The notes: generated by a model not told the origin, from the letters alone. A stretch of 63,866 nucleotides of DNA, filler included, from Guillardia theta CCMP2712 (GCF_000315625.1; 5 parts of 5 records of this genome joined end to end with filler, not necessarily neighbours in it); one strand, 5' to 3'; shown: positions 25,688 to 27,050, counted from the first letter of the whole stretch. Program-made: numbers and translations.

Positions 25688-26670
25688 TTATAATAAAGAA
25701 AGATAGATAATAATAAAAAAAAGAATATAATTTGGGGGGTTTCGCCCCCCCGCGACGAATATAATTTAGTATAATAAGCGTAATGATAAAGGGGTTTTAA
25801 TAAAAAGGAGAAAAATAATAGATAATATATAATATATAACATTATAATAGAGTGGGGATAGTTTGGCAAAGGGAGGCGAAGGGTGGCGAAGGGTGGCGAA
25901 GGGAGGCGAAGGGGTGGCGAAGGGAGAAGCGAAGGGGACCCTTTGCCATGTTTTAGCTGGATACAAGGGTAAAAGAAGGGTAAAAAGAGGATATATAGAC
26001 GTTAGGCGAAGGGGCGAAGGGTGAAATTCAATTTTTGGGATAATATTATAATTNNNNNNNNNNNNNNNNNNNNNNNNNNNNNNNNNNNNNNNNNNNNNNN
26101 NNNNNNNNNNNNNNNNNNNNNNNNNNNNNNNNNNNNNNNNNNNNNNNNNNNNNTTATGAGGTATATAACATAGAGTATGAAAATTGAATTTCACCCTTCG
26201 CCCCTTCGCCTAAATAAATTATGCAAGTTATAGAGCCAAAAAAATAAAAGATAAGAATAATTAAGCCGTGTGTGTGTGCGAAGGGTGAATATTGGCGAAG
26301 GGTGAAATTCAATTATTGCCCCTTCGCCTCTTTTGTTACTTATATGATCCTTGAAGGATTCATAATTTTAATTAATATTATGTTTTGGCTCTGGCCCACT
26401 CCGTGGGTGCGCTCGTTTGTTTTTGGTTATTTTGTGTGATAATCCGCACGAATGCGCAGCTATTATTTCAATTGAATAAAATATGATAGGGATTTGGTAA
26501 GGAAAATAAAGAGCAATGAACAGATTTTTTGATTGAATATAAAAATCATTGAAATTATAAATTGATTTATAAAAACAGATAAAAATAATGATTTATTCGC
26601 AAAACAGATAAAAATTATGATTTATTCGCAAAAAGTTGTCTCCTCACGTTTCATTACAATTAAGTGCATG
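25685..26670 (-). repeat. Right terminal inverted repeat of the PLV (contains N gap 26054-26153)
   Basis: Reverse complement of 950-1844 wherever both copies are sequenced. Confidence 0.95.
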
Positions 26671-27050
26671 CACTCCGTCTTCGTCCTCTCAACCGGCCCG
26701 CGCAGCTCCCNNNNNNNNNNNNNNNNNNNNNNNNNNNNNNNNNNNNNNNNNNNNTTAATTAATTAANNNNNNNNNNNNNNNNNNNNNNNNNNNNNNNNNN
26801 NNNNNNNNNNGGGAGGAGGGGAGGAGGGGAGGAGGGAGGAGGGGAGGAGGGGAGGAGCAAGCAAACTGTAGGGGAGTGGAGAATGACGGAGAGACGAGGA
26901 GAGGAAAAGGTGATGGAGAGCATAGCAGGGAAGAGGTAAGGAACAGCGGAAGATGGAGGGAAGCAAGAGGACAAGACAGGAGGAGGGACGAGAGGAGTTG
27001 AGAGCAGAGGAAGGGAGAAGATGAAGAACGATGAGGAGAGGAGAGGAGAG

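Follow-up and report, generated by a model that had tools for sequence, protein, structure and literature searches.

Junctions of an integrated polinton-like virus in Guillardia theta point to a probable recombinase exchange through a short core shared with the host

For polinton-like viruses (PLVs) with neither a protein-primed B-family DNA polymerase (pPolB) nor an rve integrase, the literature offers hypotheses only on end replication and on entry into host chromosomes, namely circularisation, an end module and hairpin priming. The question is raised by a window of 63,866 nucleotides from Guillardia theta CCMP2712 (GCF_000315625.1), the whole stretch of DNA presented here, of which positions 1-26710 were analysed. 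This part contains an integrated PLV, of the type carried by cryptophyte algae, that spans 950-26670 (25.7 kb) and has a GC content of ~32%, compared to ~55% in its flanks. No match to pPolB or another B-family polymerase was found in any open reading frame (ORF) of the element of at least 70 amino acids (aa), which bears out the lack of pPolB noted in the first-pass annotation, and an rve integrase was likewise without a match. On balance, we consider it probable that the insertion was a reciprocal and conservative exchange, in which the tyrosine recombinase of the element itself acted on a short core that element and host have in common.

Junction sequences and terminal repeats

The left junction reads ...CCTC|CATGCACTTAATTG and the right junction CAATTAAGTGCATG|CACTCCGTC. 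A sequence search confirmed two features that the first-pass annotation had described here, the presence of CATGCACT at both junctions and a 12-bp palindrome at the right one. Copies of CATGCACT lie at 950-957 (plus strand) and 26667-26674, with no others in the part analysed, and the reverse complement occurs at 26663 only. The palindrome, AGTGCATGCACT at 26663-26674, is perfect, occurs once, and consists of the element tip and four host bases, so that it includes the second copy of the core. The direct repeat formed by the two copies is exactly 8 bp long and overlaps the perfect tips of the element's inverted repeats, the first four bases of the left copy (CATG) being the self-complementary repeat tip. 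With CATG given by the repeat and at host composition, the probability of four further matching flank bases on either side is ~0.0076, a post hoc figure for a single insertion. CATG itself is common in the host flank, with seven occurrences in 989 nt.

The terminal inverted repeats extend from 950 to 1844 on the left and from 25685 to 26670 on the right, and each contains one assembly gap. Their outer blocks (950-1366 and 26254-26670) are 100% complementary over 417 nt, with no extension outward of the last bases at 950 and 26670, and their inner blocks (1674-1844 and 25685-25855) are 99% complementary over 171 nt. Given that the tip CATG equals its own reverse complement and that the arms match up to their final base, joining the element tip to tip, with CATG shared, would give a palindrome without a spacer, as deduced from the geometry and not from a joined sequence. 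The first-pass annotation had put the length of this palindrome at ~1.9 kb. The perfection of the tips was upheld to the last base, whereas the full arm length is only partly checkable (417 and 171 nt per arm) because runs of N occupy 293 of the 895 positions spanned by the left arm and 100 of the 986 spanned by the right arm. The inner edges of the repeats coincide with the ATG of the first gene on either side (1842 and 25687), indicating that both terminal genes have a common upstream sequence.

The only informative relative of the element is L001, a 12.2-kb metagenome contig with the same gene order and a recombinase that is 82% identical. L001 passes from AT-rich element to GC-richer sequence, that is, it is integrated too, and its junction, ...GGAGCG-CTAG-CAAGTAAATACAATGTAAACGTGAGGAGACA, aligns with ...G-CATG-CACTTAATTGTAATGAAACGTGAGGAGACA of the Guillardia element. 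The homologous tip 4-mer is CTAG in L001 and CATG in the element; it differs by two base changes and is self-complementary in both, as would be expected if this were a dyad. In addition, the host-side base beside the L001 4-mer (G) matches L001's own dyad. When 8-mers centred on the dyad were compared with the palindrome of the same element, 7/8 positions matched at the left junction, 8/8 at the right junction and 7/8 in L001, and contiguous extension past the 4-mer was 0, 4 and 1 bases, respectively (summed P ~0.013 for the three junctions). These three junctions suggest that targets may tend to resemble each element's own dyad. A conserved (CA)TGCAC target, which the first-pass annotation had put up for testing, is not supported, as the sole other junction collected, that of L001, reads G-CTAG-CAAGT at the homologous place.

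Other loci were less useful as sources of junctions. The Guillardia theta locus L002 was rejected, as neither a long inverted repeat (within 22 kb) nor a sharp boundary in composition was seen there, and so were the more distant recombinase loci L025, L026 and L027, which are giant-virus-like or carry the gene in mid-contig and have no large palindrome. An independent 2.8-kb contig from Logan run SRR30872625 (L029) encodes the recombinase in identical form and the zinc-finger protein at 99% identity, indicating that a second copy or strain of the element exists in public reads; this contig stops exactly at the inner repeat edge. The repeat-tip 15-mer had 20 matches in IMG/VR, all internal to unrelated contigs, and a 22-mer common to the element and L001 had zero matches. 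Alignments of the recombinase, capsid and primase-helicase proteins gave no confirmed relative in IMG/VR, a single scan of JGI metagenomes gave one 1.4-kb fragment that falls short of the tip, and neither the zinc-finger protein nor a repeat-internal ORF nor the junction ORF led, in exact look-ups, to a second assembly of the junctions. Only integrated copies, and no fold-back or tip-junction contigs, were found in the collections examined.

A diverged tyrosine recombinase

The product of 23304-25163 (minus strand, 619 aa) is a tyrosine recombinase and belongs to a divergent family that occurs in viruses of algae. That the element encodes such an enzyme had been claimed in the first-pass annotation and is confirmed by invariant catalytic residues, a profile match to XerA and the predicted fold. 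The protein itself had no match in Pfam, even at an E-value of 10, and none in PHROGs, and only one of 69 relatives matched the Pfam family Phage_integrase (E 0.0095). A profile search gathered 413 representatives of the family; relatives include GUITHDRAFT_145933 of Guillardia theta (41% identity) and a protein of Hanusia phi. In an alignment of 69 sequences, R319, R440 and Y475 were invariant (69/69), and K360 and R465 were conserved in 64/69 and 65/69, respectively. The classical histidine positions have diverged, with N, S or D three residues before R440 and T, N, S or H at the His III position. The profile match to archaeal XerA (4a8e, E 0.008) places R440 as the box II arginine and Y475 as the tyrosine.

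A structure model built from the deep alignment reached a pLDDT (predicted local distance difference test) of 85.5; an earlier model built on seven sequences had a pLDDT of 50 and was set aside as too poor. Foldseek comparison of the model with the PDB returned tyrosine-recombinase folds only, with probabilities of 0.97-1.00 for TelA, XerA, the Tn1549 integrase and lambda integrase and of 0.72-0.97 for Cre. TelA ranked first, only marginally and by E-value (8.3e-4, TM-score by target 0.38-0.42), followed by XerA (2.8e-3, 0.38-0.44) and the Tn1549 integrase (5e-3, 0.45-0.48), whereas the TM-scores were higher for lambda integrase (1.2e-2 and weaker, 0.44-0.58) and Cre (3.9e-2 and weaker, 0.43-0.54). 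No sequence match was found to any solved telomere resolvase or to any Pfam family of resolvases. Thus, the ranking of this predicted fold neither supports nor excludes a specific kinship of the recombinase with protelomerases.

Among the viral models in BFVD, the best match was to a protein of Virus NIOZ-UU159 (E 1.5e-27), and the matches carried the annotation tyrosine recombinase or integrase; proteins of algal giant viruses, a Qinghai Lake virophage protein and baculovirus VLF-1 came next. Members of the same recombinase family were also seen on a giant-virus-like contig of 97.6 kb (L025) and in TetV-1, Pyramimonas orientalis virus, Aureococcus anophagefferens virus, Heterosigma akashiwo virus and Feldmannia virus. 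This diverged family therefore appears to be common to algal giant viruses and small elements.

Weighing routes of insertion

We propose that the element forms a joined (circular) molecule in which the two repeat tips meet, and that the tip-to-tip junction then pairs with a host site that happens to share the core, which would comprise at least CATG and here the 8 bases of CATGCACT (4-8 bp). We infer that the recombinase would catalyse a reciprocal exchange at this point, its role being deduced along with the position and length of the crossover. Such an exchange would leave one core copy at each junction and would make terminal inverted repeats out of the two halves of a palindromic site, and one core copy at each junction, overlapping the element ends, is the pattern that marks reciprocal exchange at a core common to both partners. 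The pattern suits an element that has a tyrosine recombinase as its sole enzyme for integration. Several observations weigh against exchange through a core. If the overlap were 6 or 8 bp long and centred on the dyad, it would differ from the host site at one position, and the 8-bp identity is off-centre, which misfits a perfect palindrome bound by a symmetric dimer of the recombinase unless a mismatch is tolerated. The sample consists of one complete insertion and one extra junction, with statistics that are post hoc, and both repeats contain assembly gaps. Furthermore, a circle with a ~1.9-kb palindrome is expected to be unstable, and no joined or circular form was present in any collection examined (IMG/VR, the JGI scan and the contigs of relatives).

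The same junctions can be read as a plain 4-bp duplication, in which a DDE integrase supplied in trans, or another nuclease, made a staggered cut at CATG and inserted a linear element of 954-26666, CACT then being a chance match. Symmetric duplication models fit exactly for lengths of 4 (CATG) or 2 only, a 6-bp duplication fitting at 5/6 positions, and the duplications of mavirus-like endogenous elements are mostly 3-5 bp (PMC8547959). The abundance of CATG in the host flank also favours this route, and one 1-in-130 coincidence is not rare across a genome-wide scan. We nevertheless judge it unlikely, as the element is without an rve or DDE gene, the extra flank identity has a P of ~0.008, and the L001 4-mer is self-complementary as well, for which P is 1/16 if that 4-mer was host-derived and random. 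Moreover, the termini would be CAC...GTG and not TG...CA, the termini usual for retroviral-type integrases. Two variants were also rejected: retroviral-type TG...CA ends imply a duplication of zero length, and an 8-bp duplication with asymmetric element ends works only if the repeat happens by coincidence to continue into the duplicated bases. Alternatively, host end-joining may have inserted a linear genome bluntly, with true ends at 950 and 26670, no duplication and CACT again matching by chance. This reading agrees with the face-value extent of the inverted repeat and with reports that recombinase-encoding PLVs mostly lack duplications (PMC12220804). It is quite improbable in our estimate, since it leaves without explanation both the extra 4-base identity and the self-complementary terminal 4-mer in two diverged relatives (P ~0.004 if independent), and leaves the encoded recombinase without a role. 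Finally, the perfect tips and the right junction could have been produced by the scaffolding of a repeat. The runs of N within both repeats, a right flank of only 40 bases, the break of the independent Logan contig at exactly the inner repeat edge and the failure of junction-ORF look-ups to give a second assembly are all in keeping with such an artefact. It is very unlikely to be the explanation, however, because each tip adjoins distinct GC-rich sequence, the gaps are >400 nt away from the tips, and L001, from an unrelated metagenome assembly, has a junction of this kind too, at the homologous position.

The first-pass annotation had raised the possibility of a hairpin-ended linear genome, with one recombinase for both resolution and integration at dyad-like sites. 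In this reading, the dyad where the tips meet would be a telRL-like resolution site as well as the attachment site. In its favour, this dyad has no spacer and no mismatch, the L001 tip 4-mer stays self-complementary, TelA is the top Foldseek match in the PDB (E 8.3e-4), and a primase-helicase replicon without pPolB would presumably need a solution for its linear ends. Hairpin ends have been proposed for virophages and PLVs without pPolB (10.64898/2026.07.28.741278), and a telomere resolvase has been documented in a eukaryotic virus together with a palindrome that resembles telRL (PMC13236599). Against it, the lead of TelA is within noise, given the E-value of 2.8e-3 for XerA and TM-scores of 0.44-0.58 for lambda integrase and 0.43-0.54 for Cre compared to 0.38-0.42 for TelA; no match of the recombinase to telomere resolvases was found, by sequence or in Pfam; attachment and resolution sites, and also the enzymes that act on them, are separate in phaeoviruses and phage N15 (PMC13236599); and the collections examined yielded neither a fold-back contig nor a free form. 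By themselves, the repeat tips also show no potential to fold back (z +1.4 to +1.9), so that any hairpin would be a covalently closed duplex end that leaves no trace in an integrated copy. Taken with the points in its favour, these leave the hairpin-ended genome improbable, and reciprocal exchange through a shared core is the reading we carry forward.

The element among known systems

The insertion probably interrupts a cellular gene for an ion channel in its 3′ part, judging from the order of domains in the left host flank (1-949, plus strand, ~55% GC), where a weak match to Ion_trans at 51-539 is followed, in the expected order, by a weak match to CLZ (the leucine zipper of cyclic-nucleotide-gated channels) at 532-948. 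Both matches are below the Pfam cut-off. The open frame at 532-948 continues into the element. The right host flank available (26671-26710, plus strand) is GC-rich and open in all three frames.

At the left end of the element, the large ORF at 1842-4769 (plus strand) begins at the inner edge of the repeat and has no Pfam match and no assigned function; it may encode a fibre protein. Its sole relative, P0176, is 41% identical over 36% of the query, has a weak Bactofilin match and is located on a contig without the repeat. The 3′ end of this ORF, and with it the boundary to the next large ORF, is uncertain because a further assembly gap lies where the two meet. The second ORF (4791-9968, plus strand) encodes a collagen-like protein of 1725 aa, likely a surface or fibre protein, with matches to Laminin_G_3 (4.7e-22) and Gly_rich_2 (2.5e-14); its sequence shows collagen-like repeats of 9/18 nt, tandem repeats of 33 and 72 nt, and glycine-rich and Laminin_G_3 (concanavalin-like) domains. 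The product of 12030-13004 (minus strand) contains a Walker A motif and is a putative packaging ATPase; it has weak matches to AAA and terminase families and is 33% identical (E 1e-56) to an L028 protein that bears a Zot match. Two proteins of capsid size are encoded next to each other on the minus strand at 13995-15503 and 15541-16965. They are paralogues (22% identity, E 2e-23), are kept in L001 and L028, and have no match in Pfam, PHROGs or PDB sequences; position and size suggest that the first is the major capsid protein. An adjacent, duplicated pair of unrecognised capsid genes would be unusual for PLVs.

Toward the right end are genes for a membrane protein with a weak, sub-cut-off SLATT-like match (18022-18600, plus strand; SLATT_5, E 4.8e-4), a protein with a library match to the glutaredoxin/thioredoxin fold (18597-18854, minus strand) and a DUF5754 protein (18855-19160, minus strand; 1.5e-19), the last of which is next to the replication gene also in L001 and in Guillardia theta L002. 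The replication gene (20071-22794, minus strand) encodes a primase-helicase with PriCT_2 (1.5e-9) and a D5-type helicase (weak DUF5906), and matches the DNA primase family phrog_1156 (2.1e-59). Primase-helicase and recombinase genes are clustered beside one terminal inverted repeat, in a gene order that is the same in L001 and partly so in L002. The first gene inside the right repeat (25244-25687, minus strand) encodes a C2H2 zinc-finger protein (Zn-C2H2_12, 5.2e-5) with orthologues in L001 and L029. No interrupting stops or frameshifts were seen in the large ORFs.

Several smaller repeats accompany the terminal ones. Two tandem units of 29 bp (987-1044, mirrored at 26572-26629) start 37 nt from each tip, are absent from L001 and could be protein-binding sites. 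A direct copy of the interior of the right repeat (25888-26290) lies at 19687-20013 with 94-97% identity, so that the zinc-finger, recombinase and primase-helicase genes are bracketed by direct repeats. This copy (~330 bp) lies just past the primase-helicase gene and is rich in GGCGAAGGG units, and its counterpart in the left repeat is partly hidden by the gap. Analogous G-rich repeats are present in Guillardia theta L002 (9289-9437 and 14513-14649), where they are in inverted orientation. A GC-rich hairpin motif, with a G run, a short loop and a C run, recurs behind ORFs and inside the repeats (1774-1804, 25725-25755, 23223-23253 and, in weaker form, 9986-10016) and has a terminator-like look.

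This organisation resembles that of PLVs in which a D5-type primase-helicase gene is found beside a tyrosine recombinase gene, as in Gezel-14T, PLVs of Tetraselmis S2x and the YREC (tyrosine recombinase-encoding) PLVs of cryptophytes (PMC11296320, 10.1101/2025.10.09.676808, PMC12220804). Inverted repeat, primase-helicase and tyrosine recombinase have together been termed an end module, in which the inverted repeats were proposed to be recombinase substrate and origin, with dimer resolution also mentioned (PMC11296320), and the Tetraselmis PLVs combine the D5 helicase-primase and adjacent recombinase with a SLATT gene and inverted repeats (10.1101/2025.10.09.676808). For PLVs and virophages that lack pPolB and have terminal palindromes, hairpin-primed replication has been proposed (10.64898/2026.07.28.741278). 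The recombinase-encoding PLVs of cryptophytes show no classical duplications and are thought to circularise before integration, with occasional partly symmetric repeats of 7-23 bp that are offset from the inverted repeat (PMC12220804). The element agrees with end-module PLVs in its size, its low GC content in a GC-richer host, its long terminal inverted repeats, its SLATT-like gene, the primase-helicase gene that adjoins the recombinase gene near one end, and the lack of a classical 5-6 bp duplication. As in Gezel-14T, a segment of the inverted repeat recurs as a direct repeat just beyond the module, and, as for other cryptophyte PLVs, homologues of the recombinase are found in Guillardia theta and Hanusia phi. 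It departs from end-module PLVs in its pair of capsid-size paralogues, unrecognised by the libraries used, and in having no close relatives in IMG/VR. It also departs from published PLVs in that its 8-bp core overlaps the repeat tip, where pipelines that seek duplications outside the repeat would miss it.

Maverick/Polintons and mavirus-type virophages likewise encode capsid proteins, have terminal inverted repeats and are integrated in the genomes of protists. Both differ in possessing an rve integrase and pPolB, neither of which the element has, and in making arbitrary duplications of 5-6 bp, or 3-5 bp in endogenous mavirus-like elements (EMALEs) (PMC12220804, PMC8547959). Also comparable are the phaeoviruses, endogenous giant viruses of Ectocarpus, whose tyrosine recombinase integrates through a 2-nt identity flanked by inverted repeats and which have, in addition, a palindromic resolution site cut at positions 6 bp apart (PMC13236599). 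In both, a virus of eukaryotic algae encodes a tyrosine recombinase and shares minimal identity with its target. Phaeoviruses, however, use two enzymes at two separate sites, and their integrated ends are not long inverted repeats, whereas the element has one recombinase only and its insertion point is the dyad of the repeats. TelN of phage N15, TelA and ResT have the same tyrosine-recombinase type of catalytic fold, TelA being the nominal top structural match; they cut a palindromic site symmetrically to give hairpin ends, no sequence kinship with the element's recombinase was found, and telRL of phage N15 is not used as an attachment site. For Cryptons, the proposed mechanism is that a circular form recombines with the target through a few shared bases and leaves short direct repeats (mentioned in PMC12220804). 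Unlike Cryptons, which are a few kb long and have no terminal inverted repeats, capsid genes or replication genes, the element has repeats of ~0.9 kb and virus-type genes.

Already published are the end module, the circularisation of recombinase-encoding elements ahead of integration, and hairpin ends where pPolB is lacking; new here are the overlap between core and repeat tip and, in a relative, a tip 4-mer that has changed in a compensated way. Together, the overlapping core and the changed yet self-complementary 4-mer provide a concrete sequence signature, which can be searched for in the hundreds of recombinase-encoding copies catalogued in cryptophyte genomes. Published screens of cryptophytes would have scored junctions of this kind as having no duplication. 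If the hairpin reading were true, the terminal inverted repeats of recombinase-encoding PLVs would be the two halves of a telomere-resolution palindrome. If the signature holds, the inverted repeats of these PLVs would be tied to the site of a recombinase and not to protein-primed replication.

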